From Selaginella moellendorffii (taxonomy: Eukaryota; Plantae; Lycopodiophyta), in assembly GCF_000143415.4 (NCBI RefSeq), contig NW_003314296.1, positions 849,645-913,644 of the forward strand: a DNA stretch of 64,000 nucleotides, in the 5' to 3' direction. A program made the position numbers and the translations under genes. Position 1 is the stretch's first letter; the number at the start of each line of letters is the position of its first letter. This document shows positions 2,026 to 58,311 of the stretch, piece by piece. The notes under the pieces were generated by a model. The model saw only the letters and a list, made by a program, of their open reading frames with translations. It was not told the origin of the DNA and ran no database searches.

Positions 2026-2933
2026 TTATCTCAAACAGAGAAAATGGTTATTTGTATTTGTTGTCCACCATACTTTATTTGGTGCTTTTGCCTCATATGC
2101 AACTATATTACAATCATTTTGTATAGTTAAAAATGTAAAAATAAGACAATTTAAACAATATTGTTACTAGACCAAATTGCAATTTTTTTCTCAGTATATA
2201 AAACTAAATTTCCATCATTTTGAAGAATAATTAAACATTCACCAATATAATCTATTTTATTACTTGACTTCCATAATAAATACTTTCCAGAGTAAAGAGC
2301 AAGTTGACAATTAGATTCTAATATTAATAAATTTTTACGATTTGGGGATGTTATAAACTGGCCTTTGTAAAGATAATTATTTTTAAATCCAGCATTTAAA
2401 GTAGTTAAAGTAGTATCACAAATTTTGTAAGGAGAATAAGAGTTATTATATGTATTTATTTTATCAAAAGAAAACAAATAATATTGTTTTTGAATTAAAA
2501 TATATTCAAGTTGATATACTCTAGATGTAATTCGGCAACTATCAGAAGAAGCACTAACTATATCATCTCTATATTTATTCATTAAATTACTTATTGCATG
2601 CCTCATAGAAGTACCAGTAACATTTTTACTAATTGAAGATTGTCCAGATGAACAATATGGAGTTTCACCATCCATGCGTTGAAAAGTTATTAGAATATTA
2701 CCTCTATCACCAATATTAATAACTTGTATATCTTCATAATTTTTTGGATAATATGGAATTATTGAAGTAGAGATTCTATTATGTATTAATTGAATTCCCT
2801 CATCAATTATCATTCCAATTTCATTACGAGTTAAAGTGTTATTATTTCCAAATTCTACACTCACTTTCCTTTTTGCAGAAACAATTTTAAGAATGAAAAA
2901 ATACCATATAAAGTGTTTTCTTTTGTATGACAT
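2026..2933 (-). pseudogene. Secreted-type protein: unknown N-terminal domain + bulb-type (GNA) lectin; 1-nt frameshift near 2160
   Basis: Signal-like N-terminus; B-lectin motifs ESNCQLALY and QNDGNLVLY. After the frameshift the next frame reads YCLNCLIFTFLTIQNDCNIVAYEAKAPNKVWWTTNTNNHFLCLR*, which matches the paralog at 57.5-58.3 kb. Intronless and very AT-rich. Confidence 0.75.
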
Positions 2934-3482
2934 TTTTTATACAAGAGACTTCAATTCGTTTATTTACTCTTTTTTAATTTTTTCTACCAGATTACTCTTT
3001 TCTTGTTATATATAAAAAAATTGCTGTAAAATAACAAAAAAATATCTTTAAAATATTTTTTAAAATTAACTTTAAAAAAGTGTTCCTTTTGAAAATATTT
3101 AAACTTTTTTTTCTATTTTCTAGCTGATATAATGGTGTTTTCTATAGATGACAGTGTAGCTATTTATTAAAGTTTAAACCTAATACTTTACCAATAACTT
3201 GTTTGATTTTTCTTTCTATGAATTCACTTTTTTTTTTTTTTTATCATTTGACTCTTTCCATATGTTACGTCAATATACTTGGAGAAGTTAATTGATTAAA
3301 GGCAAATGCTTCCTTCCACTGGTATTGTAGGTCAAACACACGACTTCACTCCTTTATCTCTTTAGTCAAAAAAATATAGAAAAGAAGAACCTACAGCACA
3401 ACACTGAAAAGAAACAAGAGGATAGACAAGAAACAATGCTTTTAACCTTGACTCGGACTTTTCAGCACGGAGTTCAGTCCGA

Positions 3483-4349
3483 TTACGGAAGAGAATCGCT
3501 TTGCTGCTGCCTGTTCCTTCGAAACGAAAAAACACGGCTACTCGACCACGAACGTCTCATCCTGCAATCCTCTGGCGACGACGACGACGATGGCAGCGAG
3601 GGATTTTGATCATCCGGGGGAGCACCAGCTCTCGAGAACCTCGCAAAGATCGATCGAAACAAGGGGCTCCCTTCCTCGAGACTGGAGCTCTTCTTCCTTA
3701 TCCCCGGTGTTACTACTCCTCCTGCGCGATCAGATCCTATAGTGGCATGATCTTCTAGAGGTGGAGAGGATCCATCTTCGATCACTTGGGCGGCTGCTGG
3801 ATCGATCGAGACAACGATCGCGGCCGGATCCTCAACCTGGGCTCGACACAGGGGGCAAACGTTGGAGTGGATCGAGAGCCAAGTATCGATGCACTCGACG
3901 TGGAAGCCATGGCCACACTTTGGAAGTATCTTGACGTCCTCGCCCTCTTGGAAATCGCCCAAGCACACCGCGCAGTCGGACGACACTCTCTTGCTCTTGG
4001 AGCTCTTGTAGACCGGGAGTCTCTGGATGAGCGATTTCGAGAGAGCGGGGGTCTGGATCAAGAGGGTCGGCTGCTGCTGCTGCTCTTCGGGATCGCGATC
4101 TTGTTGATGGTCTTGCGGAGGAGAATTCGACGTTTCTGGGATTTGGGGAGAGTCGCCAGTGATCCAGGATTTGTAGCAAGAGGCGAGGAGTCTGTAGTAG
4201 CTTACCAGCAAGAAGAGAATGACGAGGAGAGTGACTAGAGCAACCACAACCGGCGTGATGCTCACTGCTGCTGTTGCCATAGCGTTGTTGTTGTTGGAAA
4301 TGCGGTGACCATCTTTGTGATCTTCGTCTAGAACTCGAGCGTGATCCAT
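3483..4349 (-). CDS. ATL-type RING-H2 E3 ubiquitin ligase (TM + GLD-like motif + RING-H2)
   Basis: Hydrophobic VVVALVTLLVILFLLVSYY, ALSKSLIQRLPVY, RING-H2 CAVCLGDF...LPKCGHGFHVECIDTWL...CPLCR. Intronless; first in-frame ATG at 4349. Confidence 0.93.
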   Translation of the reverse strand: MDHARVLDEDHKDGHRISNNNNAMATAAVSITPVVVALVTLLVILFLLVSYYRLLASCYKSWITGDSPQIPETSNSPPQDHQQDRDPEEQQQQPTLLIQTPALSKSLIQRLPVYKSSKSKRVSSDCAVCLGDFQEGEDVKILPKCGHGFHVECIDTWLSIHSNVCPLCRAQVEDPAAIVVSIDPAAAQVIEDGSSPPLEDHATIGSDRAGGVVTPGIRKKSSSLEEGSPLFRSIFARFSRAGAPPDDQNPSLPSSSSSPEDCRMRRSWSSSRVFSFRRNRQQQSDSLP

Positions 4350-4474
4350 GGAGGAATGGACTCTTCCCCAAATCGGGGCTTCCACTCTTGGAACTTTTCT
4401 TCCACTCGGAGTAAAACTTTACCTTCGTATCGTCATCTAATAGACAAAGTTAACGGGATTTTAGGGTTCTTGGC

Positions 4475-4482
4475 TAGGGTTT
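4475..4482 (-). promoter_or_regulatory. Telo-box (AAACCCTA) in the ATL/RPL39 divergent promoter
   Basis: TAGGGTTT about 30 nt upstream of the RPL39 ATG; telo-boxes are typical of plant ribosomal protein promoters. Confidence 0.55.
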
Positions 4483-4512
4483 TGGAGTGTCGCCGCCGCG
4501 AGTGCTGCCGCC

Positions 4513-4803
4513 ATGGTATGTATTCTCTGTTTCGCTTTCTCAGCGTGGCGCTGATCGATTCTCGCGCAGCCGTCGCACAAGACGTTCCGGATCAAGCAGA
4601 AGCTGGGGAAGAAGCTCCGCCAGAATCGCCCAATTCCTCACTGGATAAGAATGCGGACGAACAACACCATCCGGTAAAGCGCTTTAGATTTCTCATCTCC
4701 AAGAGAAAATTTCTCACTTATTTCTTTCTTTCGTTTCTCCTTCCGAATTTGCAGCTACAATGCGAAGAGGAGGCACTGGCGAAGGACCAAATTGGGTCTT
4801 TGA
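4513..4803 (+). CDS. RPL39: 60S ribosomal protein L39 (exons 4513-4515, 4570-4673, 4755-4803)
   Basis: Spliced product [51 protein letters not shown]; GT-AG introns. Confidence 0.97.
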
Positions 4804-5049
4804 ATTCCAGTTCCAGTTCGATCGATCGATGGTAGTTCTTTTGAGATGAAATCTCTGTTAAGTCGAATCTTGGTAGGAGTTTTTGTTGATCCTTGAGGAA
4901 CTTCAGACCAAACAAAGAAATTTTAGTTTTCTAGTCCATAAGCGATGAGACTGGTTCGTGCATCTCGATGTGCTTCTATAAAACTTAGATCAAAGCTCCA
5001 AGATCGAAGCTGCAGAGCTTAGCAGATTTCCATCACAAGAGCCTCAGTG

Positions 5050-5395
5050 AGATGTGGAGCGACGATGGTGGAGTTTGTGACGTTGAGGTGGGGGCTGGCA
5101 TGGAGTTTCTCCAGTGCTGGAGCAGTGAAGGGTGGATCTGGCGCAAGTTCTTTCGGGGCTACGAGCAGCAGCGGGAGTTTTTTGGAGGGAAAATGCAGTG
5201 CATTTGAGGTGCTGGAAGATCTTGGGAGTCACTTGGAAGCTCGATGCGGCCACTTTTGCGATCCTTGGATCAACAAAACTCTGATGGCAAATTGGAGTTT
5301 AAGGAGACGTTCCAGCAAATTTCCACATGCTTGCTGACAAAAATATGGATAAGGCTAATATGGATAAGGCTAGTAGTGCAGCTCTTGGGAGCTTG
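5050..5395 (+). pseudogene. Deletion-riddled fragment of the 3' part of the METTL16/FIONA1 gene
   Basis: Shares blocks such as GAGGTGGGGGCTGGCATGGAGTTTCT with 19120-19560 but has many short deletions. Confidence 0.85.
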
Positions 5396-6259: not shown

Positions 6260-9200
6260 ATGAACCGTCCATTTAGGAGTGAATTTAATCTATCCATTCT
6301 TGTATATAAGCAGGGGTATAAACCCCAATGAAGATACTTATTCCTATATCCCGAGCACTCACATTGGTGGAGGTGAGAGGCACTGCAATTTGTCCCTAAA
6401 GGCCAAAACTTTTTGGTAGTGTTTTGCTCTAGTGTTCGGGATCGTGTTTTTTTTATTCTTATTTCTTCATTCTCTTTTAGATCTAGATTTATATTAGCTT
6501 TTTGCAAGATTTAGAATTTTAACTATTGTTGTGCTTAGATTTGCTTTTTTCTTTTGATCTTCATTGCATTTTCTTCTTCTATAATGCCACGTTGTTATCA
6601 ATCAAGGAGTATATCACTTGAGGCTATTAATGCTACTCTGTTGGATCGAATTTTTTGTGTTGTGGGGTGTGATCATATTGGTGTTGCACCCATCCTTGGT
6701 GTGTTGCCGTCTTCAGCTTTTGTGGGACATGATTACACGACTTGTCTTGTTCTCGGCGTTCTGCCATCTCTTGTTGATGTGGAGTATGATTGTGATATTG
6801 ATTGGCAAGCTATGGATGATGTAATTCAATTCTTGGAGAATGTTCGAGGATCAAGTTTATGGGAAGATGATGTGTACAAACTCGAGTGGATTCCAGAGTG
6901 TGATGATGAGCTTGATTATTATGGAGATAGCTTTGGAGATGAAATGAAAATTTCACGAAGTATGTGTCAATATTTCAATCTGCCATCTAATCCTTTCTTT
7001 TTCCCTTTTTCTTTTTCCCAACCTTTTCTTATTTCTCGGCCTGAGCCACTTGCTCATGTTCTTAGTATTTCCTCCTCATCTGCAGTGTTTTCTTCTCTTG
7101 ACACGTTGATCATTTGTGATTCTCATGATTCTCATTCTTAGTCTAGTGTTGAGTTGAATGCTTTCTGTCCTCATACTAATTTAGATGTTGAGTGTGTCCA
7201 TGAAGTTGAGAATCTTGATTTTGTTTCATTGGTAAAGTCTTTGAACAGTTTTGGTGTTGAGTATTCCCTTGTTCCAAGGGTTGAGTCACTTTGGCCAAAG
7301 TTTCAGGTTGAATGCATATCCCCACTTATGAGTGCCACTGAGAATCTTTACTTTACTATTACTGTTGAGGAATTTATATATTCCCTTGAGAGTGTGGATG
7401 TTATTATTGATTTTCCCATCTCAAGTGTTAAATTGTGTATTGAGGAGGTTGAGCGGTGTGAAATTTTTGCTTATATTGTGGTGGCCAAAGTATTTTATAA
7501 TAGGAAGTCCTTTATTTTTCAAGCTTTAAGCACATGTTCTTTTGATTTCCCCATTTCTATATTGTCAGTTATTGTAAATTCTTCTTCCGATGCTTCTTTA
7601 TCCACTTTTTCTTCTTCCATAATTGTTTTTCCTCAATTTTTCTTGTTTTCTCCTTTTTGCCCCGACATTTCAAACTTTTTTTTTTTCGGAGGAGGGGGTA
7701 GAGGGGATAGACGGGAGTCCAGCCTCGACGATGGAGTGAGGATGAGTGCATACGATAGTGGAGCGAGGACAAACAATATAGATTGTGGAGTGAGGACGAG
7801 TATATCAAATCTAAACGGAACATTTGGCCCCAACATAGTAAGGCTAAATGGATATGATAGTGGAGTGAGGCCAGACATAGATGGTGGAATGAGGACAAGC
7901 GTAATGAGTTTGAATAGAGCCAGTGCTTCAAAATTTTTTTTCCTTCAAAGAGGGGATAAAGAGAATGTAGAGGATGAATAGAGTGAGTCTGACCTCCCTA
8001 GTTCAAAATTATAGTTACATGGTTGGTTTGAGCATTTAGGAACTATATATGGAGTTACAATTAGTTCATCAAGGTTCCCTAGTCAATTAATGCTTAGGCC
8101 ATGGCTTTGAATTTTATTTCAATCATAATTATCAATAACTTTGTTGGTGGCTTTGTGGGAGCTTTAGATTTTTATGGTAGTTTATAATCACCCAGCAGAA
8201 ACTCCAAATATTCCACCTGACTTATTATCATCACCTTTTCATCTTCCAAAGGGAAGGATGGTATAAGGTTTATAAATACATATATATATTACCTTAGCTA
8301 GGTAATACACTAATTATAGTACTATAACATATGGATCATCCATTTAGGATTGAATTTAGTCCATCCATTCTTGTATAAAGTAGGGGTTTAAACCCCAATT
8401 AAGATATTTATTCCTATATCCCAAGTAGTCACAATATATATTACATTAATTATAGTACTATAACATATAAAGTGACAAGGCTGGAGATCTAGCACCTCCA
8501 ACTATATCTATTGTTGTATATAAGTAAACTCATATTAGTGGACGTAAGAGGCATTGCAATTTGTTCCTAAAAAGTAAAGATTGTAGCATGTCCTAATGTA
8601 GCACATGCTCTTTCTTTTAATTTTCATTACATTCTGTTTTTCTACCATGCCACACTATCATCAATTAAGAAATATATCACTTAAGGCTATTGATAATACT
8701 TCATTGAATTGAGCTTTTGATGTTGTGGGGTGTGATCATATTAATGATACACCCATCTTTGATATATTGCTGTCTTCAATGTCTATGGGATATGATTATA
8801 TGACTTGTCTTATTCTCAGTGTTCTTCTACCATCTTTCATTAATGTGGAGCATGATTATGATATTGATTGGCAAGTTATAGATGATGCAATCTAGTTCTT
8901 TGAGAATGTTTAAGAATTGAGTTTATGGGAAGATGATGTTTATGAGCTCGAATATATTCCAGATTGTGATAAAGAGTTTGATTATTATAGAGATAGTTAT
9001 AGAGATAAATTAGAGATTTCATAGGATAGGTATCAATCCTTTAATCTACCATCTGATCCTTTCTTTTTACTTTCTACTCTTTCCCAACTTTTTCTTATTT
9101 CTTAGACTATCTCATGTTCTTAATATTCCTTCCTCATTTGCAATATTTCCTTTTCTTGGCACATTGATCAATTTTTACTCTCATGATTTTTATTTTCAAT

Positions 9201-9658
9201 CTAATATTGAGTTAAGTGTTTTCTATTCTACTAATACTGAATGTTAAGCATATATATGAAGTTGAGAATCTTATTTTTATTTCTTTTGGTGAAGTCTTTA
9301 ATCAATTCTAATATTAAGTATTCTCTTATTCCAAGTGTTGAGTCACTCTAACTAGAGTTTCAGATTGAGTGCATGCCTCTAGTTGTAAATGCTATTGAAA
9401 GCTTTTATTTTATCATTGCTACTGAAGGGTTTATATACTCCCTTGAGAGTGTAGATTTTTCTATTAATTTTCTTGTCTCAAGTGTTAAATTATGTGTTAA
9501 AGAGGTTGAGTGGTGTGAATCACTTATTTATCTCGTGCTAGCCAAAATATTTTATCACAATGTAATCTCATAAATTTGGACTTCCTAAGTTGTATTGAGG
9601 AAGTTGAGCAATGTGAATCTTTTACTCATTTTATGCTAATTGAAGTATTTTATCATAG

Positions 9659-9845
9659 TGTAAACTCCTGAGTTTAGACTTTTTGAAAGGTCACCCAGCT
9701 TAATACTATTCAAACCTAAAGACACTTAACTGATTAAAAAATGGGGTGCACTCTTATTCATGAACTCATTCCTTTTATATTTGAACCTTTATAGATCGTC
9801 TTTTAAATAGTTCTTTTTAATTGTTTACAATTCACCATGCTTCTC
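9659..9845 (-). mobile_element. Additional degenerate LTR of the same TRIM family with adjacent PPT-side sequence
   Basis: TGTAAACTCCTGAGTTT...GGGGTGCACTCTTATTCAT...TTGTTTACA aligns with 5667-5861. Confidence 0.75.
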
Positions 9846-10817
9846 TAAAAGTTCTTTTTGAGTTATTCTTTTTTGTTATTTACACAATAGATCTTTTTTT
9901 CATTAGGCTTTGAACATATTTCTTTCTTTTCTCCCATTTCTACTTTGAAAATTATTAAAAATTCCTCTTTTAATGCTTTTTTATCCACTTTTTTTTCTTC
10001 TATAATATTTCATCCTCCCTTTAACATTTTTTTTTTCTAACATTTAAAAATTTCTTATCTTCAAAGGAGGGGGTAGAGGGGATGGATGGGAGTCCGGCTT
10101 TGATAATGGAATGAGGATGAGTGGATATAATAGTGGAGAAATAATGAACAATATAAATTGTGGAGTCAAGATGAGTATAATGAGTTTGAACAAAATATCT
10201 ATCCCTTATGTAATGAAGCCAAATGGATGTGATAGTAAAGTGAAGCTAAACATAAATGGTAAAGTGAGGACAATTGTAGTAAGTCCAAATGGAATCAATA
10301 TTTCAGAACTTTTTTTCCTTCGAAAAAGGGATAAAAAGGATGTGGAGGATAAATGAAGTGAGTGCGACCTCCAATGTGTGGTATTGGACGAGAATGACAG
10401 TTATGATTCTAAGTTAACATAGAACATAGATCTTGAATGTTGATAAAAAAAAAAGACGCAAAAGTAGATTCTACTTATGGTTGTAAGTCCGAGTTAATGA
10501 TAGTCTTGGTGGATTGTTGACAGATAAACTTAAAGATGGGATATATTATTTGCTATAATAATGCTTTATAGACTGTAGTGGCTTTCAAAGTCCTTTGCTT
10601 TAGTTCAAAAATATGGCTTTATAGTTGACTTAAGCATTTGATAATTGCATATAGAGTTGCAACTGATTCATTAGGATTCTGTAATGGACTAATACTTGTG
10701 CCATAACTTTAAAGTTTTGTGATAGTTTTTAATTGTGTAGTAAAAGCTCCAAATGTTCTATCTGACTTATTGTCATCACTTTTTCATCTTTAAGAGGGAA
10801 GGATGGTGTAAGGTTTG

Positions 10818-10832
10818 TATATGTATATATAT

Positions 10833-10910
<78 letters not shown>
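10818..10910. repeat. Compound microsatellite (TACA)n(CA)n(TA)n within LTR3
   Basis: Seen directly in the sequence. Confidence 0.95.
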
Positions 10911-10912
<2 letters not shown>

Positions 10913-11479
10913 CTATACACTAATTATAGTATTATAGCGTATGTACCATCTATTTAGGATTAAATTTGGTCCATCCACTCTTGTAAATAAGTAGAGGTCT
11001 AAACTCCAATTAACACACTTATCCTATATCCTAATCACTCATAGCTTCATTATAAGTTTTTTAATTATTTTTGTTTAATGAAAATCCTTTTTAAAAATAG
11101 TATTTATATAAATGATATATATGTCTAATTAATATTTAAAAATATATATTAAAAAATAAAAAATTATAAAATATGAGTACATGGAATACAGAAATAGAAT
11201 ATACAAATATGCATATCAATTAGCCCAAAAACCCTAGTTTATATATAAGAGCAAGTGGTCCAGATTAAAACCAATCTAACAACTATCAAAATCCTATTAT
11301 GCTAATATTAGTATACGATATTATAGCCATACATTTGGACCTTCATCACCTCCTCTAAGAATGATGAAAGATAGTCAAGGTTCTTTAGTGGATAGGCTAA
11401 GATCTAGAGGAACATTAGAAGGAGGTGTCAATGGATTTATAGATTGTGCTAATTATATTAACACCAAATCATCCACTTT

Positions 11480-11690
11480 GTATCTAACAGTAGTTGTAAA
11501 TGCATTAGCAAAAGTACTAACTTCCACCTAGCAAGTTAAGTAGTCATAAACAATAATAACATACTTAGTTTTAGCAATTGACCATGGAAAAGGCCCTATT
11601 AGATTAAATGCCACCAACTTAAATAAACAAGAAATTACAATTAACTCCAATTGTCCTTTTGTAACACAAGAGGGAGTATTATGAACTTAA
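11480..11690 (-). mobile_element. Degenerate Ty3/gypsy integrase fragment
   Basis: Minus strand reads LELIVISCLFKLVAFNLIGPFPWSIAKTKYVIIVYDYLTC*VEV, similar to the gypsy GPLP...YILVAVDYFTKWVEA motif. Confidence 0.55.
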
Positions 11691-32134: not shown

Positions 32135-34491
32135 CTAACTGATGCTGGTCTGCTCAGAGTTTTGCCTTAAATCACAGAGGAAGCCAGGCTTTGAGATGGT
32201 GCCACTGATGTCCATGTCACCCATGAGCATCCCCACCACTTTATACATCACTGGGCGCTTGTTTTGACTGGCTTGTGTGCAGTGGAGAGCAACTGTGAAC
32301 ACTCGCTTGATCTCGTGAATCTCTCGCTCACCCACCTCCAGTCTCTTGTCAATGATCTCTTGGAGATTGCCACTTTGGAATGCATTCCATGCCTGTGGTG
32401 ATCACACAAATCTAGAAGATCTAAACTTTAAAACCACATACTCACCCATTCGAGCAAGAAAAACTCGCTGAAGTCCATGTTTTTTCTTCCACTTATGATC
32501 TCAAGAACAAGAATCCCAAACGAATAGACGTCGGCCTTCACGGTGAGCTGACCATAGAGAGCATACTCTGGAGCTAGATAGCCACTAAAGATGGAAAAGT
32601 TAAAACAATTAGATAGAGAATTGGTGGAATAACTCACGCTGTTCCTGCTGCTCGTGTGCTGATATAGCTTCGACTTTGCTGGATCAGTCTTGCCAATCCA
32701 AAGTCCGAGATCTTTGGCTTGAGATCGCTGGCTAGAAGAATGTTGAGGGCTTTGATATCTCTGTGTACGATGGTTACCTGCGATGTTTCTCCGTGCAAGT
32801 ATGCCAAACCTTGGGCAACACCCACACAAATGTTGTATCTGGCAGTCCAATCTAGCTGCAAATCATTCCGCACTGAAATGGAAGAAACTCTAGTCAATAA
32901 CTCTTCATGATTTCTTAAAAGATCTCTTTAGAGTTGCTAACCAAACAAGGCGTCCGAGAGGTTCCCATTCTCGACGAGCTCGCAGACGATGAGCTTGTGT
33001 TCTTTCTCGGAGCAAAACCCGAAAAGCCTGACAACGTTTTTGTGTTGGAGCAGGCAAATCGTGGACACCTCATTCTCGAAATCCAGCCTCGCTTTCTCCG
33101 ATAGATCGGAGCTTGTCAAGTATTTCACCGCAACAACGTGACTGTCTATAACTCCCTGAGTGTGTGTATCAACAATGGAGTTTTTCTCGGTAAGAAAGAC
33201 CATCGAATTTAGACGAATACCTTGTATACACTCGCAAATCCGCCGGTGCCAATCAAGTTCTCCTTGTGAAATCCTTTCGTAGCCTCCTGGAGCTCTTCGT
33301 ACGAGTATTTCTTCGCCTTGCTACCGGGTGGTAGCCAGTTCAATGCTTCCCCACCAGCTCTTATACTGCGCGTTCTTCGTCGCAAAATCACCACGACAAT
33401 TGCCACTCCAACAACGAGCGACACCGCTCCCAAGAAAAATCCAAGAATCTTTGATCGTTTGTTGGACGAGCTTGAGCTCGTTCCATTCGGCAAAGGCAGC
33501 GAAACTGGACTGATCGTCGTGCCATTTCTCCCAATTGAAGATGGATCTGCACAACAAAGGTATGATCTCATCGTAAGCTCTTCAAAAGCTCGCCTTTGAA
33601 AGTGTTTGAACTCCACACAGGCATGGGACTCTTCATATTGCTGATGGCGTAGATCACCATGTTTCGATCTTTCTGCATCGCAAACAAGGACGCATTCGTG
33701 GAGTTGTTCGTCCCAAATCTCGCTAACACAGTCCCGTTTCGATCATACACGCCCAGCGTCGCCGTCTCCTCGAGAACAAGCTCGCACTCCCGTCCACTCC
33801 CCTTCGTTCTCGACTGCCACAAGACCTCGTTGCTCGAACTGTCGCTAAACACCGCATTGCAATCCTCTCCCATCTCCAGAACGTACTCGGGCCTTCTCAT
33901 GGATTTAATCCGGCAGCCCGGGTAGAGCCTGTCGAAAGCACTGAAGCTCAATCGCGTCCCCTCGTAGCCGTAGCAGTAGCCGATACTATCCGTGGTGTTT
34001 TCGATCCGGAGAGACGAGCACGATCCATTGGATCCTCGCAAGTTCATCCCCTGGATGTAGTATCCGGCTTGGAACTGGCCTTGCGTGACATAGGCGGCTC
34101 CATAGCTGCGGTTCATGAGACTTTGAAGATCCGGCAAGAGAGCCGTGAATCCTTCGCGAAGCTTGCTGCCACTGCTACCAAAATGTGGGCTAAAGCCGGG
34201 GCCGCAGTGGTCGACGTTGTAGAAGTAGAGATTGAGAACCAACGAGAGATTGGATTCCGGGAGAAACAAGGTGTCGCCAATGGCCTGGCCCCGGAAGTAT
34301 GGATCCGTGGCTCCATCGTAGACGAGCTGGGCAGGGATTGTGGTGATGAGGGCTAAGAACCTGGCGTGGAGCTCGTTGCTGGCGGCATCGGTGAGGGTGT
34401 GATCGTCGTCTTGGGTGTGCATGAGGAGCTTCCCAGCGGCTAGAAAGTTTGCTCCAAGGATCATCAAGAGGGTCAGGAATAGCATAATCAT
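32135..34491 (-). CDS. Receptor-like Ser/Thr kinase: signal peptide, unknown domain, B-lectin, TM, RD kinase (exons 34491-33594, 33546-33221, 33155-32942, 32872-32638, 32584-32446, 32392-32135)
   Basis: B-lectin [11 protein letters not shown]...[10 protein letters not shown]...VWSSNT; [24 protein letters not shown]; kinase motifs [46 protein letters not shown]. The first intron is GC-AG, the others GT-AG, and all exons join in frame. Confidence 0.9.
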
Positions 34492-36149: not shown

Positions 36150-39100
36150 GTGGTATAAGATTGCCTTGAAGGGGGGTTGTGAGCACTTGAACACGAAGTT
36201 GTTTAGGTGATTTACACCTTGATAGAGCAACATAAAGTTGACTATGTGTGAAAATAAGTTGAAGGAGGTAAATGCCAACACGATCATGATCGAAATTTTG
36301 GCCTTAAGCTTTAGAAATAGTTAAGCAATAACCCACACGAACTAAGAATTCTCTTCAGGACATCTTAAAAGGGATTTCAAGATCAGAAGGTGTAAAGGTA
36401 ATACATAGAATAAAAACTCGTAATCCCTTGAATTGTCTTATGATAATTTCACAATCCAAAATGTTTTGAGATGCTTGAATGAGAATGAGGTGAGTGTGAA
36501 GATATACTCCTAAGAAGAATCAAAATCACATTTTGTTTTAGAATTAATTTGTGTGGTGTAGTCTCGATAGGGTGATTGAATTTAAAAATTCAATTGAGAA
36601 CTCTTCAGGCTGATCTAAGTCAATTGTGTCAATGCTCAAGTAAATAAATGCTCAAGACTACGTAGTAGTCTTCCAACAATGTCATTATTTATTCTAAATA
36701 TGTCATCATTGAGTGGGGTGAGAATAACCTTTGATGCAACTGTGTAAGTCTTTATAATATCATCGGTATTTGGGAAAACAAAGTTTATAACAAGTGTAGA
36801 GATAGATTATTCATGTGGTATTTTGATAATATCTGGTGGGAGATATGGCAACTACAAATTACTATCACCATTGCCAAGTTTGAGATGCCATTCAGAAAAA
36901 TAAAGATTACTTGAATGTATGTTCTTTATTAGTGTTAGTGTTGTAGAGAGTGACTATAATCTATTTATTTTAACTGAGCTTGAAATAATAGAAGTTCTAT
37001 AGCCATAGGGAACAATAAAAAGGGTTTGACAAAAGTCAACACTTGTAACCATTATAATGCCTCCAAATAGTACATTTGAGATGCTTTAAAAATTTATCAA
37101 CTGCAGAAAAAGCATGTGTGTGGACCATATTAATTTCATCCCATATGAAAATATTTTCTTGTTAATGGTTTTTCTAGCAATACTATTAATTGTTAAAGTA
37201 GAAATAGAAGTTTCATTGAAAGGAACAGAAAGCTTAAAAGTTATATGTGTCATTTAACCATATTTTAGCAAAATGCCTGCAATTCTAGTTCATGCCATAT
37301 TGATTACTTTTTATTTTTTTAATTGTAATGTTGTAATGATGGTATTAAGTAGAAAAGTTTCCCAGTACCACTAGATGTAGCAAAAAAGAAACATTGATGA
37401 TGGTTAGTGTCATAATGAATTCAAAAATATAACGTTGTTCATGATTGAATTGATTTATGTTTGCATTGATTTGGTTTTGTGATGGATTAGAGATTTATGT
37501 ATTAAGCATGTGTTCGACAATGGGAGTAAGAGTTGGGAGTGGTAAACAAAAATCACAATTAGATTTATTCTGTAGTTGGAATTTTTAGTTAATATTGAGT
37601 AAAGCAATATCAAAATAGTTTATATAATTTCTAGCATAATCCTTAAATATATCAATTTGAATTGATTCTATAATAGATTTGGATCTTTTAGTGAATAATA
37701 CAAACAAATAAAAAATAATAATTGTCTTAATTGGGATGGCATTTTAAAAGTAGAAGCTTCTTATATACAATATTGCCATTTTGAATCATCTGTTAGAAGT
37801 TCTATTGCCATAGCTACTTGTTTAAAAAAGGAGAAAATAACACCTTTGACAATATGTATATATCCTCAAATGATATAACACCTTTTTTATGGAATAATAA
37901 AATGGTACAACTCACTATTAGAAGAAGATATAGAATACATTCTTGGTATGAATTTAGCTTTTCATTGGCATAATTGCCATTTATGAAAGGATTTATTATA
38001 TATATAGTATAATGGAATTTGAGCATATGTGTATTACCTTGCATTAGTATCTTGCATGTTTAAATTGAACCATTGTGTAAGCATTATTCTATTTTGAGTG
38101 GTTCTTTCTAGTGCTTTTTTTTCATGACCTGGTATGAAATAGACATTTTAAAAATTAGGTAAATGAACTAGAAAGCATATAATAGTTAGTGATTTATCAT
38201 GCATATGAAACTTAAATATATGCCACATGGCTTTGGGAGCATAAATATATCAAACATTGACAAAACTTGAGATTTCGTCCCAATTTAAAGTTCCTCATTG
38301 GTCAAATGTAGTTAGGAATTCTAATGTCACATAGTCATAACCTTTGTATACATATTAAAATAAATACTTAATACTTTTAATAGAAGCACAAATTTCTACA
38401 TTGAGGTGTGCTTTATATTTCTTACAAAGGTATTTATTATAAAGAACAACTCATCTATTATCAATAGTACAACCATTTTTTATGAAAGTGCGTATATTAT
38501 TGAGTCGGTAGTAATAAGGATAACCATCAATACAATAAATGGTTTCAACATTAAATTCTTTTAGATAATTCTTAGAGCATTTGTTATTTTCCATGCAAGG
38601 GCTTCTAGAATTTATATTACCATATGGACCATATATCATATAATTTGTAATTATGTTATGCAATTCTGGTTTTAGCAGTGGGTGTGGCAACTGTGCAGTG
38701 GTAAATTTGTCAACCGAGTCATGGTTTCTTATCTTGTCTTTGCTTAATAATATTGCTAAGAAATGACAATGAGGCAAACCTCTTTTCTGGAATTTAATAA
38801 CATAAACATATGCAATGCACTTCCTAAAAATTCCTTTGATACTTATGTCATGTAGAAATTCTTTAAGTTTTAAGTTGAAAACTCTTGAAATAAGATCAGG
38901 TCAATCCTCAAGTGATTTATTGGATTGTAAATTTTACACAATTTCAAGCCACTTTGGGTTGCGTGTAAATGTAATAAATAAGTCAGATTTTCCAAAATAT
39001 GTAACAATAGCAATAGCATTTTGATAATATTGTTGCATTGCTCATAGGCTATTAGAAAATACAGAAGGTAAAATTATAACTTTTCTAGACTGAACGTTAT

Positions 39101-40100
39101 TAGTAGCACCTCTATTGCTAATATAGTCCATAAGACCTATGTAGCAATCCACTTTTAAATATTTTTGATGAGTGCTAAAGAAAGTAAAGTTGCTAGGTTC
39201 AACTTTTACATAAGCATCAACCATAAATTGTTAAATAAACTTCCCAACATGTAACAAAGGAAAGAGTTGCCAATGCTATTTTGTTGAGATAATTAATATA
39301 CATAGTATTGGAGTAACGTTACATTGGACTCATTGTGGTAGATTTTTTCATGCTAACCTTTATCACCAAATGGTAAAAGTAAAGGATAAACTATAGAATC
39401 ACAATTTTCATTAAGAATAGATTTTTTTTTTGGCTGTGAGTTTTATGGATGTATGTGTATTTCTTTGTCAAGAGATGGCTCACCCTCATCAATAGCAAAA
39501 GCAACAGCAACATCATTAGTTTGTGGCAAGTCATAATAATGTAAATTAGTACTTTCACTTCTAACAATCATATAAACATCATGTTTCGGAATTCCATTGC
39601 AAATTGAGCGACGTTGTTCTTGTGATTCAAGATTATACATCATTTGAAAAGCTTTTGCATATGGGTTTATTGGTCTTAGCAAGTGATCTAATTGTAATAA
39701 CAAATTAGGACCACAATTTGTGTTGAATGGGTTTTGCTTTCTAATATTTGTACCCTCAAATGTGTCAAGCATGTAAAGTTTTTCATATGATGGTGGCACT
39801 TTAGCAGCAAGATATGCTAAAGCAATACTTTGATATATTTAACCATGTATTTTAAAGCAATATGGGCCTTTACCACTTAAATTATTAACATTAGCACCCA
39901 TTGATGCAAAAGCTAAAGCACTATTAAAATTTCTTATGTTAATTTTAAAGTTGAAGTTTTTATTTTCATTAAAAAGCATACGCAATATAATAGGTAAAGA
40001 TACAAGTTGGGGAAGGGAAACCTTTCCATTTTAGCAGCACATTGATCTTGACTCATTTTCAAAATGTAATGCACTACAAAAGACACATATGGATGACATA
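36150..40100 (-). mobile_element. Decayed Helitron (Rep/HUH + PIF1-like helicase)
   Basis: Minus-strand motifs INPYAKAF, MVDAYVKVE, FGKSDLFITFTRNPKWLEI, FQKRGLPHCH (HUH), DGYPYYYR...IDNR, helicase GK(T/L)FLL Walker A remnant, IWDEINMVH, FGGIIMV; many stops. Confidence 0.85.
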
Positions 40101-40929
40101 TTTCCAATATTAAACATATATATTATATGGTCATTATAATTCTTTTGATGTGCTAATTTGTAGATAGTGTAACTATGATGATTGCATGCATTTGTATTAC
40201 TTTCATTAGCATTTTCAAGGTCTATATTTGTATGACCTTCATCAGCATATGCTATATTTGTATTAGCATCATCAAGATTTAAAGTAATTTTTGCATGTTA
40301 AATTAGTTTCTTCATTACCATATGCAAGGTTGTTGTAAATATGAATATATGTGCTAGTGTCAATAGTTGGAGGTAATTGGTGACATATGCCTCTTAGTAC
40401 TCTGCGAAGCCAAGGTATATTTGCTAGGGAGGAAGTTTTATTTGATAAATGAAATGAAATAACCTATTTAGTGCAAATTTAATCTTAAGGCAAGAAGTAG
40501 ATGCGAGTGATGCATCAATCTAAAAGAAAATCAAAACACTTATCTTATAAGTTTTAGAGATTCTAAGTAAAAGCCAGAACTCGCATTCTTACACTAGAAA
40601 AAAAATAAAAATAAAAATAATCGAAGATTATACAGTGAGAGCACAATCTATATACACCTTAAGCTATAAACAAAAGAGACTAATCTACTAGCACACCTTT
40701 TCCAAGGCATGGTGAGCACTCAAAAAGCCTCTCATGCTTTTTAGAATACAATGACACTTGAGCTATGAGAGGTGAGTGGGCTTTGCAAGTTTGAGAACTC
40801 ACATTGGGCTTGTTCTCTCTTGTAGAAGGATAGGGACTGCAAACTCTCTGATGGTTCTAGCCATGAAGGCTGGCTCTAGCTCCAACTTTGCTGCTTAGTG
40901 GCAACCATAGGGGGGTTCTGTAGGGGTTG

Positions 40930-42460
40930 TTGCCAAATGTATAGTAGGGATAGTGGATAGGTTAGGCATGACCTAAAGTGTAATTTAGGTCTTGTTTGTA
41001 TGCTTATCTTTGTTTTGCATCTGGTATGAGTTTAAGCCCAAGCTCTATACCATACTAGCTGGTGGAATACCCATATCCTCACGCTAAGCCACCAGTATGC
41101 TGATATAGCACTAAACTTGGTTTAGCTTCATTTTATATATTGCTTTTGGCATTGGATGTTAGATGCTTTAGGACTATTCCAACATTGCTTTCTACTCCCA
41201 TCCCTTTGCTCCTTGGGCTGAACACTCAAGAGTCACTCTGTGCTTCAGTTTTTTTATGTTAATACCTATACTATAGCTTTGTCTATTAGGATGTTGTGTA
41301 CCATATGAATCCATCTCGTGATTTTCACTTTAGTTTTGGATGAGTGTTGATTATGTATGGCTAGCCTCTTTGATTATGCTTGAAGTTGTTGGCTATACGT
41401 ATTAATGGGCTTATTGGAGTTGAATTCGATTCGAGTAGTTATTTTGTCCATACTTATCCATGTTTCTATATATTATACCTAGTGTGTTACCTTCTTGTTA
41501 AACAAGGGGGTTCCAAATGTATATTAGGGATAGTGGGTAGGTTGGGCATGGCTAACCAATCTAAAGCATAATTTAGGTCCTATTTGCATGCCTATCTTTG
41601 TTTTGCATCTAGCTTGGGTCTAAGCCCAAGCTCCATACCATATTAGCTAGTGTAATACCTATATCCTTGCATTAGGCTTCCAGTATACTAAAATACTGCC
41701 AAACTCCATTTGGCTCTATTTTGCATGCTAGCTTTGGCATTGGGATGTTAGATGCTTTAGGACTATTCCAACATCATTTTGTGCTCCTATCCCTTTGCTC
41801 CTTGGGCTGAATGCTCAAGAATCACTTCGTGCTCCAATTCCTTCACTCCTTGGTTGCAAACTCAAGAGTTAGACATAAATCCCTAAGCCTCAAAGTTGGT
41901 AGTGGTTGATGTAAAAGTCTAACAAGTATAATATGTTTGGACCAAAAACTTCAACTCAAAAAGTTGAGAGTGAGAGTGGAACTTAAAAAAAAATGCTCGA
42001 GGAATGAACATAAAGTGATCAATGAATGAGTCTCTAAAAAGGGACACAAAAAGGACCGATACATAGCAAATGTCATGACATATGGAAGTGTCAAGACCGA
42101 GTCCGAGATGTAATTCAAGAAGGAGTCCAAAAAGAAATCTAAGATAGAATCTGAAATGCAAAATGACCAAGAGGAACATATAAGGCCAAGAGCTAGTAAT
42201 AAAAGGATTGAACTAAATCATAGTAAGGATAGTGGATAGGTCAAGTATGGCTAACCAACCTAAGGCATAGTCTATGTCCTGCTTGCATGTCTATCTTTGT
42301 TCTGCATTTAGCTTAAGTCTAAGCCCAAACTCCATACCATGCTAGTTGGTGGAGTATTTATATCCTCACGTTAAGCCATTGGTATGCTGAAATAGCACGA
42401 AACTCTATTTGGCTCCATTTTGTATATTGTTTTTTGCATTGGAATGTTAGATGCTCTATT
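40930..42460 (+). repeat. Three diverged copies of a ~250-300 bp module related to the middle of the young LTR (43585-43870)
   Basis: Repeated GGGATAGTGG(A/G)TAGGT...CTAAGCCCAAG...GCTAGCTGGTGGA at about 40935, 41515 and 42220. Confidence 0.75.
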
Positions 42461-50259: not shown

Positions 50260-50264
50260 AAAGG

Positions 50265-52270: not shown

Positions 52271-53289
52271 TACATAGGTTTCACTTCAATGTTTAGAGTG
52301 ATGTATCAACTCTTCCCATAGTTATACTTGTATTGTGGATTATTGATAGCTAATTGGTGGTGGATGACAATACATAAGACTTTGAAAAGGGTGATAAAAC
52401 ATGCCTTAGATGCTACATATGGTGAGATCTTGATGTTTCAGATCCTCGTGTCCAAGATGCAACTCGATTGCCCTTGCACATTTGCTTTGCTCCATAGGTT
52501 TGGAACGAGTGCATAAATATAGCACACATCACCACTCCACTATAGGTAGTGTTCGCTAAACTCTATGTGGAGTGTGTTACATAATAATATATATGGCTAG
52601 TGTATCCTTGGGACAATGTAGGTTGGCACTAGGTATATGCATCACACACTCTTTGTAAAATTGGAGACAATTACCAATAATTTATGCACAGGCTTTTACC
52701 ATTGTATGATATCCACCACAATGCCTACTAGCACTCAGTTTGTGGACATCATAAAAGACATTTGTGACTTTGCAGCAAGTTAGTCTCACCCTTTAAAAAT
52801 CATCACATCTTTCATATTTGCTTACAAGCACTCGGTGGTGAAGATGAGTATGGTTCTGTGCTTTTTTTAAGGTAGTAGTGATTATACTTCATCACTTTGT
52901 GGTCTTTGCTAGCGGCCCAATAGATTGCTATTAAGGTCTTCCCTTATCAAACCACCATTACCACCACATATGGAGCCAAGATGAAGATCTGCTCCTCTAC
53001 CGTATGAGAGGTTCATTGTGATATGGAGCAATTTTGTGTACAAGATAAAATATGTAATCACCCCTCTTTAAATGGTTTGACATAAAAGTCTATTTTAAAT
53101 ATATAATATAAAAATAGATATATCATGAACTATTCACAACTTCAAGTAGCATCCTGCCTGCTTCCAGTTCCAAAAGTCATATGGTATTACTCCAAGGACA
53201 TAAAGGAAGGGTGCTTGGGATGCTCATTCAACCTCTAGCATGTATGTGTGGTAAACATAGTATGTTTACTAGGTTGATGTTATGGTAGG

Positions 53290-53762
53290 CATGTGGGGAT
53301 AGAGAAAAATGCAACACTTGAGTCTAGGGCTTTATGTCTGATCATCATACTCCGAGGAACTAGGATGAGAAACATGGGCAATTGAAAGGGCTTGATCGAT
53401 TTGGTTTGCAAGCTATTTGCATTGTGGAATATTATGTTTCTTTTGTGCATTTTTGCTTGCAGCTGCACAAAGTGGATAGATCATTGGATTTAATTGTGCT
53501 AAAAAATTCGAATAACCACTTTAGTGGGGTTTGGAAGGAAATTACATAAATTTTTTAGGTGTAAATTTGCTTTTTCTCTCTTTGCTGTGTGGATAAGAAG
53601 AGTTTATCTGGGTGAGAAATTGTTACTTTATGTGACTCGTTGAGAACAAAATACTGTAGATTTTATTTTTCTTTTTCACAATTTTTTATGAGCAGCCAGC
53701 TTTATTTTGTAATGTGCTTGGAGCTCCATGCTAGATAGGGTATAAGCAGTAAAAAGTAAGGG
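53290..53762 (+). repeat. Inverted copy of 56822-57245 (upstream region of the papain-like gene)
   Basis: Shared blocks AGTCTAGGGCTTTATGTCTGATCATCATA, TTTGGTTTGCAAGCT, GAGCTCCATGCTA and AGCAGTAAAAAGTAAGGG. Confidence 0.85.
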
Positions 53763-54235: not shown

Positions 54236-55112
54236 TCATGGCTTTTCCCATAATCAAAGGTGTTTTTCCATGTCATATAAATAAACATTTCCATCATCTT
54301 CAGCCATCAATACCAACTTACTGTGTCTGTTCTTCAGTGCAAATCTCCATACCTCTTTCACCGAACTGAAAATGTATAATCCACTTGATCTTAAAGATAA
54401 GTAACAACCTTCACCTCTTCCATTTGTGTCTGCCACCCACAATACAACATGAACTTCATAAAAAACCAGATTGCAATCTTTTTGCATAATCAGTTTAAAA
54501 ATTCCGTTTGGTGATATGATTGTATTACCTTCCATTATGTAATTTCCAAATGCTTGTGATTCTTCAAAAATGGAACTCATAATGCTTGAACTATATACCT
54601 AGCAATCAACATCACCATCATATACAAATTGACTCTGTAAGTTCAAAGGAGAAGGAAAGGTTTTATTTTGGATTGATGAAGGAATTCGATATCTTGAACG
54701 TTTGGAATATTCCAGTGATACATGTCTAAAAGTTCCAATTACAGTTCCAAAGTTTCTTATAGAACCATCTTGAATAACAGCAGCTGCAAGACCCATAAGA
54801 AGTCCTTTAATTAGATCACCCCAAACATACCCTAGGACACGATAAGCACGACAAACACGACAGTTCCATGGGCATCCTAATGATTGTGAAAAAATTGAAA
54901 ATGTATATTGTATAGTTGTTAGCGGAACTGTGTTCGACCAACTACCAACACGTTGAGGACCATCTGGTATAGTTTGAATTACAGAATCAACGTGTTGACG
55001 AAATGATTCAATGCCTTCAACACTGATCCCTAATGGATCTGCAACATAATTAATGGTTTGACAATAGAAAATATATCATTATTACAAAGGAAAATATTGT
55101 GATTATTTTCAC
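54236..55112 (-). pseudogene. Unknown-domain + B-lectin gene with a frameshift in the signal peptide and in-frame stops
   Basis: KIITIFSFVIMIYF/YCQTINYVADPLGISVEGIESFRQHVDSVIQTIPDG...DVDC*VYSSSIMSSIF...MQKDCNLVFY...AEDDGNVYLY...HL*LWEKP*; the two listed ORFs are in one frame across the TAG at 54601-54599. Confidence 0.7.
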
Positions 55113-55808
55113 TTCAAACAAATTATCAATATAATTAATATCCAGCCTAACCCTCTATGTATATACAAACGTTGATGACAAGAAAATTCATATGCTGGGA
55201 GCATAGTCGATTTCTTAGCCATCAAGAAGTGACGGAGTCTGAGATTTGAGCTTTGTTCAACCTGAAATAAAGGTTCTGATCTGAAAAAACACATTCATCT
55301 TATTTTTGTCCTGTATTTGTTTCAAATATTTGACTCAGCTAGTCCATCTGATTTGTTTTATACTTTTGTTAAAACCTAAATTATAACAATAAGCTAAATT
55401 AATAATAACTTTAATGAGAATTAAAGGCACTAACTGCAGCTACAAAAAACTAGCCTAAACAAACTCGTGTTCGCTGTTGGAACGAGTGCTAATACGTATG
55501 TGTCATCGCAGCCCCATTGCAGCTCAAAATCCCATGCTCTTGAGCGACCAATCCCTATTCGCTTCTTCTTCCTTGCACAATCCTGCCTGCTGCTTCTGAA
55601 TTTGAATGCGAAGGAGATGAAGCTAGCAGCAGCTAACAAGTGAGGAGGCACTCATCGCAACGCCCTGCAGTGTGCCTTGGCACTTCTTAACAAAGTACTT
55701 GTTTATGAGGTCTTTGGTTTGATGCGGAGTCTCGTTAGTTAAGAGGTTTAGCTAGAGAGATACATTTAGAAGCAAAACAAATTACATTCTGCAAAATGTT
55801 AATCGATC

Positions 55809-56664
55809 TCAAAAGTTTGCCACATGGAATATTTCACCGAATCCGGAGCGTTTATCCCCAAAATGGATGTAAAACAATCCACTGTCACCATAGCTCTCAC
55901 CGTGTGAATTTAGCAAAGTCCATAGCCGCTCCTTCCACTTGAAGCCGACAACAAGAAGACAATGCTTGAACTCTTGCTCGTAGTCTCCAACATACACGTA
56001 GTTGTTATCCAAACTGTCTCGTCCCCAATCACGGCACTTCACAGCAGTTACTGCAGGCCCACGGTGAGTCAACCAGCTGGCAAACGCAAGGATCGCAGAC
56101 TCATCAACAAGATTACCAATGTCCACTCCCATATTGGCCACCCTTTTGAGCCGAAACTTCTCAGGGTCCCCATACAACCACTTGTCATAAGCGATCTCCA
56201 ACCTCGACCGGTTACGTGCCTGATACTGCCGGTAGTTTGCAGCCCTGGGAACTCCAACGTTGGTAAGGAAGTCCAAGCAAGCTCCGGGAGATCCGCCCTC
56301 ACAAGAAACTGTAAAGCCAATGGAGCCGAGGAACTTAGTCTTCAAGCTGTCTTTAGCCTCAAAGCCTGGCTCACAAAAGTCATTACAAAACTGGATGCTT
56401 AACAACTCATTATGCCCTGCGATTTTTATCAGACTTTCCATCAGGCCAATCGAACAAATCACCCAACAATCCCGCAGCCCCAATGTAGTTTTCCAGTTGA
56501 TAGATGGCGCTGCAACTGCCACGTCAACCGATGAGTCAGCCACCAGAAGCATGAGACTAATGGATCCAAAAATGCAAGTTGGATTATCATTTTTGCATCA
56601 GTGGTGTCCTTGTTGTTGTGGTGATTCCGCTCACTGGCCTTGCCTTCTTCTTTTCTGCGGCCAT
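55809..56664 (-). CDS. Divergent papain-family (C1A-like) cysteine protease without signal peptide or propeptide; probable frameshift at about 56592
   Basis: DCW (catalytic Cys), SCEGG, KHCLLVVGF (His), LLNSHGESYGDSGLFYI (Asn). The ORF from ATG 56552 is intact; the upstream ATG at 56664 joins it only if one A is removed, as in the copy at 63.2-63.4 kb. Confidence 0.7.
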
Positions 56665-57489
56665 TCAAGGTCTCTGATTATGGTTGCCTTCATTGCATGT
56701 GTGATGCCATCACAACTCCATGTATTTCAGGTAATTGGCGAGGGATGAGGTTGTCTCCTTGATTGCGAGGATTATATGTGTTTCCTGTCCTAGTCGATCT
56801 GGGGCAAGATTTGTACTTTGAGCCCTTACTTTTTACTGCTCACACCCTATTTAGCATGGAGCTCAGCTACGTCAAGGATCCCACATTACAAAAAGCTGGC
56901 TGCCCATAAACAAATGCGAAAAAGAAAAATAAAGTCTGACAGTATTTTGCTTCAGTAACCCAATTTAGCTAAGAGACACAAAAAGGCAAATTACACCTAA
57001 AACATCTATGCAATTTCCCTCTAGTCCCAGCTAAAGTGGTTGCCATTCAAATGTTCTAGCACTATTAAATTTAGTGATCTATCCACTGTGAAAAATGCAC
57101 AAAAGAAACATAAATATTCTATAGTGCAAAGAGCTTGCAAACCAAATTGATCAAGACCTTTCAACTTGTCTCGGTTTCCAAATATGATGATCAGACATAA
57201 AGCCCTAGACTTGTGTGCTGTCACATTTTTCTATTTCCCCACATGTCCAATAACAGTTTCAGATTCTCATTAGCAGATTTATTTTTTTAGAAAAAATAAA
57301 TATTTTATAGAAAATTAAATATAAAATATTAATGGATATTTCCTAATTATCCATAAGCTCTATATTATTTTATAACTTACATATGTTATTATACTTACAC
57401 TATAGTTAAATCAAATATAATTTAAACATATACATATATATACATATACATATATACATATATACAATTAAACTTAGTTTTAGTTTAGG

Positions 57490-58311
57490 GAATACGTAAT
57501 AAAAATATTGGGGAGAAAATAATACTTTAAATTACCAAGAAATGAATGAAATATTTAGATCAGGCTTTCATGAAATTTTGATGTGTATTAATACATCTAT
57601 TGAATATAATTCAAATGATATCTATTATGATTTTCAAGCAATAGATTTTGGTAGAGGCTCTAATAGTAAAGGATAAAATGGTATATTTCATGGTTATCAA
57701 ATAAGAGATAGTTTAAAACATTTAATATGTTTAGAAAACATATGTATATTGCAGGTTCTAGTTTATTTAGTGTTACTGGTCTACATTATTCCTTTGCATA
57801 TAATGCTTTTTATTGGTGGAATAATTCAACAACTTTAAATTCTTTACAAGAAAAAATTAGATATATTGAATCAAATAACCTAAATTGCTACATAAAATTA
57901 ACAACTTTATATGGTGGATTTCCTAATAATTTTCTCATGACAGATTCTTTACTTGTATCTCCAAATGGTAAAAATATTTTATTATTAAGATCAAATTGTA
58001 AACTTGAGCTTTATTCTGGAAAAATCTCTATATGAGTATCCCCAAATAAAGAAGAATATTATAGTTTATGTAAGCTAATACTTCAAATTGATGGAAATTT
58101 AGTTTTATATAATGAAAAGAAAAAGGTAGTCTGGTCCATTAATAAATATTGTAAGCATTCATATTGTTTACAAATTACATATTTAACTATACAAGATGAT
58201 TGTAATATTGTTATATACAATGGAAGGGTACCAAATTATCCTTGGTGGGATTCAAAAACTTATAAACATCCATATTGTATAAATAATTATAGATTTATTT
58301 TAAATTTATAA
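57490..58311 (+). pseudogene. Paralog of the 2026-2933 unknown-domain + B-lectin gene (stop at 57674, frameshift ~57725, TGG>TGA at 58033)
   Basis: YWGENNTLNYQEMNEIFRSGFHEILMCINTSI vs FGNNNTLTRNEIGMIIDEGIQLIHNRISTSI; SPNGKNILLLRSNCKLELYSGK; QIDGNLVLY; QDDCNIVIY. The 5' end is uncertain. Confidence 0.8.

Follow-up and report, generated by a model that had tools for sequence, protein, structure and literature searches.

A sensing module that is shared between receptor kinases and kinase-free proteins recurs in plant immunity and self-recognition, as in SRK and SLG, in CRK and CRRSP, and in the LysM receptor kinases and LysM proteins. The arrangement described here comes from 64 kb of nuclear DNA of the lycophyte Selaginella moellendorffii (contig GL377600.1 of GenBank assembly GCA_000143415.2), and this whole stretch is called "the window" below. 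It carries one receptor kinase gene and three kinase-free ("stand-alone") loci, at which an N-terminal region precedes a C-terminal GNA-type lectin. These loci probably represent a lineage-restricted module, an orphan N-domain joined to a GNA-type beta-prism lectin, that occurs in a receptor-kinase form and a secreted form and arose by local duplication; a probability of roughly 60% is assigned to this reading. New are the statistical link between the N-domains of the two forms and the co-location of secreted and receptor-kinase forms in the genome.

To judge by analogy, the nearest known pattern would be SRK/SLG of the Brassica S locus, with CRK/CRRSP as a looser parallel. Here as there, a B-lectin receptor kinase is genetically linked to kinase-free secreted ectodomain paralogues, and the lectin part of a structural model of the window receptor superposes, as far as this prediction goes, on the lectin of the SRK9 ectodomain (5gyy_B, Z 8.2). 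A single-pass membrane helix and a predicted Ser/Thr kinase are also present, in the window copy by way of a putative GC-AG intron. As to a homology over the whole length of the SRK/SLG kind, the two forms are linked at two loci and the similarity of their lectins is significant, and the N-domains reach a P of about 0.003, which is a fragile value. In the canonical S-domain (SD) receptor kinase, a B-lectin at the N terminus precedes S-locus-glycoprotein/EGF and PAN domains, and this layout was not found. The Selaginella receptor contains neither S_locus_glycop/EGF nor PAN, and its lectin is located next to the membrane, behind the orphan domain. A domain order unlike that of the canonical proteins had been claimed in the first-pass annotation of the window, and the Pfam analysis of the paralogous kinases P0002 and P0013, with matches to kinase domains alone and none to S_locus_glycop or PAN, agrees with this claim. 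The Selaginella soluble copies also differ from SLG in being 25 to 33% identical to the receptor instead of near-identical and in being broken in the window, and no self-recognition role is implied for the module.

The parallel to CRK/CRRSP consists of a lectin-like extracellular module in both receptor kinases and small secreted proteins. In addition, the source of the Selaginella kinase describes it as similar to LRR-VIII-2, a type that belongs with the DUF26 and SD-1 kinases. The module itself is not of the DUF26 kind: no Pfam match to DUF26 (PF01657, Stress-antifung) was obtained, and the positions of the cysteines do not fit the C-X8-C-X2-C motif. The monocot mannose-binding lectins, such as GNA, the Polygonatum lectin and SCAfet, have a domain homologous to the C-terminal part of the module (expect values, E, of 6e-14 to 1e-8), and this part of the module keeps QxDxNxVxY sites. 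They differ from the Selaginella proteins, which have a single lectin domain behind an orphan domain of about 150 residues and with a B_lectin score below threshold.

Receptor kinase and stand-alone copies

The four loci of the window were found where the first-pass annotation had placed them, each with a C-terminal GNA-type lectin. They are listed here with a paralogue from a second locus, L003; ORF stands for open reading frame.

2029-2933, minus strand: 2k copy, with a 260-codon ORF at 2151-2933 that runs from a signal-peptide-like start through the N-domain to lectin subdomains I and II
32147-33546, minus strand: remaining receptor kinase exons, encoding a Ser-rich stalk, a transmembrane helix with basic residues and an RD-type kinase
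33547-33593, minus strand: putative 47-nucleotide GC-AG intron that joins exon 1 in frame to the membrane exon
33594-34491, minus strand: receptor kinase exon 1, which starts with a signal peptide and continues with the orphan N-domain (about 33928-34419) and then a GNA-type lectin (about 33594-33927), the mannose site of which is intact
54257-55075, minus strand: 54k copy, with a 158-codon open N-region, an in-frame stop at 54599-54601 and then the lectin
57503-58308, plus strand: 57k copy, a pseudogene interrupted by two stop codons (57674-57676, 58033-58035) and shifted in frame near 57724
L003:20212-21081 (contig GL377583.1), minus strand: stand-alone paralogue, an intact AT-rich ORF of 289 codons with signal peptide, N-domain and three lectin subdomains

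Broken copies were read with an X at each break, and exons were used one by one. A tblastn comparison with P0002 and P0013 placed the downstream part of the receptor kinase gene in blocks at 33385-33221, 33158-32622, 32583-32449 and 32395-32147, so that the stalk/membrane exon extends from 33546 to 33221 and the kinase exons reach 32147. The VAVK, HRD, DFG and APE motifs are readable in the kinase frames of the window, and Pkinase was matched in the paralogues P0002/P0013 with an E of 1e-43 (Pfam). In GenBank, this locus (32135-34491) is split into two genes, one for a protein of 307 residues that reads through into the intron up to a stop and one for a kinase of 239 residues, and the membrane exon is left out. 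Three paralogous loci share the donor AAAG|GCGAGC and a pyrimidine-rich acceptor. The RefSeq models of the paralogues use a different, GT-AG intron that takes out the last lectin strand, and the acceptor of that intron is deleted in the window copy. Because the context of the GC-AG intron is conserved, the gene can be regarded as intact, and it is probably functional provided that these 47 nucleotides are spliced out.

An exhaustive phmmer search with exon 1 among 1.84 billion representatives yielded 449 hits. Among the best 150 of these 449, only P0002 (80% identity to exon 1) and P0013 (E 2.5e-16, query residues 76 to 226) covered the N-domain, and the rest matched the lectin only. Both proteins are receptor kinases of S. 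moellendorffii that share the layout of the window gene, so the claim of a lineage-specific module stands within the scope of these best 150 matches. The paralogues P0002, P0152 and P0153 are 75 to 80% identical to exon 1, and P0013/P0155 about 32%. The sources of P0002 and P0013 name them as similar to LRR-VIII-2 or At1g56140, and one older model is a "Bulb-type lectin domain-containing protein." Word-index protein searches with the 2k ORF, exon 1 and the P0013 N-domain returned nothing beyond the queries themselves, and tblastn of a phage collection gave no match.

The module had been described as "fast-evolving." This is true of the stand-alone copies, with 27 to 54% identity and a ratio of nonsynonymous to synonymous substitution rates (dN/dS, omega) of about 0.4 to 0.7 at saturated dS, and not of the receptor kinase ectodomains, with an omega of 0.18 to 0.30. 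For exon 1 against two paralogues, omega was 0.28 to 0.30 in the N-domain and 0.18 in the lectin; by these ratios, the receptor kinase ectodomains are under purifying selection, N-domain included.

The three loci without a kinase had been called stand-alone genes. As loci with a lectin they are real, but as intact genes they are not, since all three are broken. In the 2k copy, the frame changes between positions 2151 and 2163, and subdomain III follows in another frame (2029-2163). By our estimate from the base composition, a frame of 260 codons stays open by chance with a probability of about 1e-11 at 24% GC. In the AT-rich copies, the GC content of first and second codon positions (GC1/GC2) is 0.30/0.33 compared to 0.12 at third positions (GC3), and GC3 of the 2k copy is 0.12. 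The lectins of the 57k and 2k copies are 54% identical in amino acids and 70% in nucleotides, and the nucleotide similarity of the two copies does not extend beyond the coding region, the flanks being unrelated. Because of the long 2k ORF, the contrast in GC between codon positions and the restriction of similarity to the coding part, the stand-alone copies appear to have been coding until recently. In the 54k copy, lectin site I is intact and the last strand is missing. Splicing does not rescue this copy, for the GT..AG intron that offers itself upstream is out of frame. Judged by their reading frames, the 2k copy is nearly intact and the 57k and 54k copies are pseudogenes. Both the receptor kinase and the 2k copy have a hydrophobic, signal-peptide-like N terminus and the 57k copy has none, as had been stated; for the 54k copy, to which a signal peptide had also been ascribed, none was seen, and there is no in-frame start. 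All stand-alone copies are 25 to 33% identical to the receptor kinases. They stop directly after the lectin, and no kinase remnants were found beside them by tblastn of P0002 and P0013.

The L003 gene is located 8 kb from the receptor kinase P0002 and is not annotated. Public gene calls hold no record of exactly its product or of exactly the product of the 2k ORF. Being intact, it indicates that kinase-free members are real genes elsewhere. The module thus occurs in a receptor-kinase form and a kinase-free form, as had been claimed, and the two are linked at two loci, in the window and at L003. Further copies were sought in four paralogous loci and by a 6-kb contig walk, and the L003 gene was the only one found.

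The two forms differ in base composition. Each stand-alone gene unit coincides with an island of AT-rich sequence about 1.3 kb long (1900-3250, 57300-58650 and, at L003, 20200-21250), in which GC3 is 0.12 to 0.17 and the observed/expected ratio of CpG is 0.06 to 0.31. GC3 of the receptor kinase exon is 0.70, and the CpG ratio of the receptor kinase gene and of a nearby RING gene is 0.8 to 1.0. The 54k copy is in between, with a GC3 of 0.22 and a CpG ratio of 0.49.

Lectin part and N-domain

The lectin connects all four loci. A tblastn search within the window with the 2k ORF and receptor kinase exon 1 as queries recovered the other copies via their C-terminal parts, and all six pairwise lectin alignments scored better than shuffled sequences (p from 3e-4 to below 1e-7, Smith-Waterman, 400 shuffles), with a p of about 1e-7 for the homology of the 54k lectin. 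The receptor kinase ectodomain matched GNA lectins of the PDB, 1dlp (SCAfet) with an E of 5.9e-14 and 3a0c with 8.6e-11, up to 1e-8 for others. Residues 180 to 290 of its AlphaFold model, with a predicted local distance difference test (pLDDT) value of 50 to 75, matched GNA lectins (Foldseek E 2e-7; VIA-align Z 11.1 to 3mez_D). The model thus predicts a beta-prism II fold for the lectin of the receptor kinase, the copy and part to which the fold comparison refers. Pfam B_lectin (PF01453) detects the lectins of the module below its gathering threshold, with 13 to 28 bits compared to 32.4 (E 4e-4 to 0.1), and because of these low scores the public annotation misses most of these domains.

A motif scan found at least one complete QxDxNxVxY mannose motif per copy. 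Intact are site III of the receptor kinase, sites II and III of both the 2k and the 57k copy, site I of the 54k copy and site II of the L003 copy, the sites I and III of which deviate from the motif in the Q alone. The lectin parts therefore carry predicted mannose-binding sites.

The situation is less simple for the N-domain, which comprises about 150 residues with two positionally conserved cysteines. The N-domains of the 2k and 57k copies had been said to align clearly, and they are homologous (Smith-Waterman score 80, p 5e-6); the L003 copy matched the 2k N-domain with a p of 0.009. Weaker echoes had also been noticed between the receptor kinase and the stand-alone copies. Pairwise alignment did not substantiate them (p 0.03 to 0.4); profile-profile comparison, after the intact paralogue had been added, supported a link between the two forms with a P of about 0.003. 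For this comparison, a receptor kinase profile of four rows was aligned by hhalign to a stand-alone profile made of the L003, 2k and 57k copies. The score was 25 over 74 to 86 colinear columns (P 0.0025 to 0.003). When the columns of the stand-alone profile were shuffled 360 times, the mean score was 11.6 with a standard deviation of 2.1 and a maximum of 20.9, and none of the 360 shuffles attained the observed score. An unrelated control protein, P0123, gave a P of 0.12 to 0.76 against the N-domain profile and was rejected as a relative of this domain.

The positions of the cysteines point in the same direction as the profiles. Without exception, the receptor kinases and AT-rich copies have one cysteine 35 to 38 residues ahead of the cysteine of lectin subdomain I, and a second one, 104 to 115 residues ahead of it, is shared by the receptor kinases and the L003 and 2k copies. 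In an alignment of seven N-domain rows, no variation occurs in the L-T, C, G and Y columns. Homology of the N-domains of the receptor kinases and the AT-rich stand-alone copies is supported by these comparisons, but not strongly.

The 54k copy is another matter. Its N-region gave no significant match to any other copy of the N-domain, and the echo "ITTIP/IQTIP" that had been taken as a sign of kinship is indeed present in it, yet no better than expected by chance. The kinship of this region rests on its position and length only and is unproven. A "four-member family" with one shared N-domain, as proposed in the first-pass annotation, is consequently too strong a statement, since membership of the 54k N-region is not demonstrable.

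As to the nature of the N-domain, Pfam at permissive thresholds, the PDB by sequence and by profile, and feature searches of the ESM-Atlas gave no match or, in the last case, no usable one. The AlphaFold model had a pLDDT of 39 from the single sequence and of 46 from the seven-row alignment, and the N-domain was not modelled: its pLDDT was 25 to 64, with a helix at residues 35 to 50, a hairpin at 70 to 89 and a helix at 108 to 129, all at low confidence. A degenerate first lectin domain is not favoured, because the low-confidence model contains helices and no lectin match occurred in the N-part. An RNase was discarded as well, as Pfam and PDB matches were missing. P0123 (291 residues), a protein from the phmmer search, displays another layout in which an unknown domain precedes a GNA lectin; its N-part of about 175 residues is unrelated, and its canonical lectin has three intact sites.

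Origin of the two forms and competing explanations

The proposed module would exist in two forms, one being an ectodomain encoded by a single exon in a small family of RD-type receptor kinases and the other a group of small secreted proteins encoded by extremely AT-rich, CpG-depleted codons. The window would then hold one receptor kinase, if the 47-nucleotide GC-AG intron is spliced, and three decaying kinase-free copies. One form probably originated from the other by local duplication, either when the exon of a secreted lectin fused to a gene for a transmembrane kinase or when the ectodomain exon was partially duplicated. At the cell surface, the receptor kinase would perceive mannose-type glycans and pass a signal on through its kinase, and the intact soluble members elsewhere would act as secreted lectins. 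Several points weigh against this explanation. The link between the N-domains depends on the rows of the profile, with a P of 0.2 when two stand-alone rows were used and of 0.012 when the 57k pieces were kept separate, and tests of hidden Markov models versus single sequences gave a p between 0.008 and 0.17. The tree of 281 lectin domains (FastTree) was unresolved, and the lectins of the receptor kinases and the stand-alone copies were not sisters in it. The unreliable model of the N-domain precluded a fold comparison, all three stand-alone copies of the window are broken, and both the splicing of the GC-AG intron and the expression of the copies are presumed.

Some of these points could mean that only the lectin is shared. 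The N-regions of the receptor kinases, the AT-rich copies and the 54k copy would then be unrelated fillers or independent orphans, and several GNA-lectin genes would merely be neighbours. No pairwise comparison of receptor kinase and stand-alone N-domains is significant, the profile comparison with two stand-alone rows is negative, the 54k N-region matches nothing and the two forms do not come out together in the lectin tree. Such coincidence would, however, have to produce a colinear profile-profile match above all 360 shuffles, a cysteine framework conserved relative to the lectin, an identical length and order of the domains, and the proximity of the two forms at two loci, which makes this explanation possible but doubtful. 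Alternatively, the stand-alone copies of the window may be dead partial duplicates of the receptor kinase ectodomain exon that decay by methylation-driven C-to-T transitions, and an independent secreted family would not exist. All three copies are broken, and their CpG ratio is 0.06 to 0.49 compared to 0.8 to 1.0 for the receptor kinase. The 54k copy, with an intermediate GC3 of 0.22, joins the receptor kinase lectins in the tree on a long branch. The intact 289-codon AT-rich paralogue at L003 does not fit such an origin, and neither does the 2k copy, in which the 260-codon ORF and the periodicity of GC1/GC2 versus GC3 speak for a coding constraint maintained over a long time. The copies are also only 25 to 33% identical to the receptor kinases and have unrelated flanks, and they end right past the lectin without kinase remnants. 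Death of the duplicates is therefore quite unlikely as a general explanation, but may be true for the 54k copy alone.

The N-domain had also been considered as a lectin-targeted effector. If it were a strongly diverged enzyme or toxin domain, such as an RNase or the A chain of a ribosome-inactivating protein (RIP), the proteins would be AB-type lectin toxins. The layout of a domain of catalytic size plus a lectin would agree with this, and nothing else does. Pfam gave no match to RIP (PF00161) or another family at an E of up to 10 for the 2k copy, the window receptor kinase, the L003 copy, P0155 and P0002, and the PDB was blank by sequence and profile. The RIP A chain is much longer than the N-domain of about 150 residues, and the same domain is part of a receptor kinase ectodomain under purifying selection, so a toxin is very improbable. 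The preferred reading, a module in receptor-kinase and secreted forms, can also be extended. The N-domain might be a new extracellular fold and, together with the lectin, a composite ligand sensor, within a system of its own made up of a receptor and a soluble partner or decoy, the soluble arm of which lies in methylated, AT-rich chromatin resembling transposable elements and is expressed under particular conditions. This extension is unlikely. At the locus itself, a pairing of the receptor with soluble partners or decoys, as suggested earlier, found no support: because all three copies are degraded, a working pair is unlikely to exist there now.

Surroundings of the loci and biological meaning

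Ordinary plant genes are interleaved with AT-rich, CpG-poor islands across the window. The genes and other features recognised outside the module are as follows.

3483-4385: RING-H2 gene, an ordinary plant gene near the module loci
15987-18224 and 59214-61746: pentatricopeptide repeat (PPR) genes, ordinary plant genes
18190-19602: RNA methyltransferase gene, an ordinary plant gene
53278-53762 and 56823-57255: pair of inverted repeats of about 485 nucleotides with 71% identity
55809-56552, minus strand: ORF of 247 codons for a papain-like protease, with a weak Peptidase_C1 match (E 6e-10)

The protease ORF has the same orientation as the 54k lectin copy and precedes it by 730 nucleotides on the minus strand, and motifs seen by eye in it resemble the contexts of the catalytic Cys, His and Asn. 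The inverted repeats flank the 54k copy and this ORF and may be the remnant of a transposon. The other AT-rich, CpG-poor islands of the window (36500-41000, 8000-12500 and 19800-22500), with a CpG observed/expected ratio of about 0.2, contained short ORFs only and no Pfam match, and they are probably old repeat debris. Taken by composition, the CpG depletion of the AT-rich islands is what long-term cytosine methylation would be expected to leave behind, and open frames have been kept nonetheless. With a GC3 of 0.12 versus 0.70 within 64 kb, the window is a useful natural case of a methylation-type mutation pressure alongside coding constraint.

The practical value of the module is limited, for the copies in the window are decayed and its proposed functions are those we infer from sequence. 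Its description would add a currently unannotated domain family, as the stand-alone genes are missing from the public annotation, which also divides the receptor kinase of the window in two. If the preferred reading is true, the assembly of a new receptor ectodomain would have an independent example in the lycophyte-specific combination of an orphan domain with a mannose lectin.

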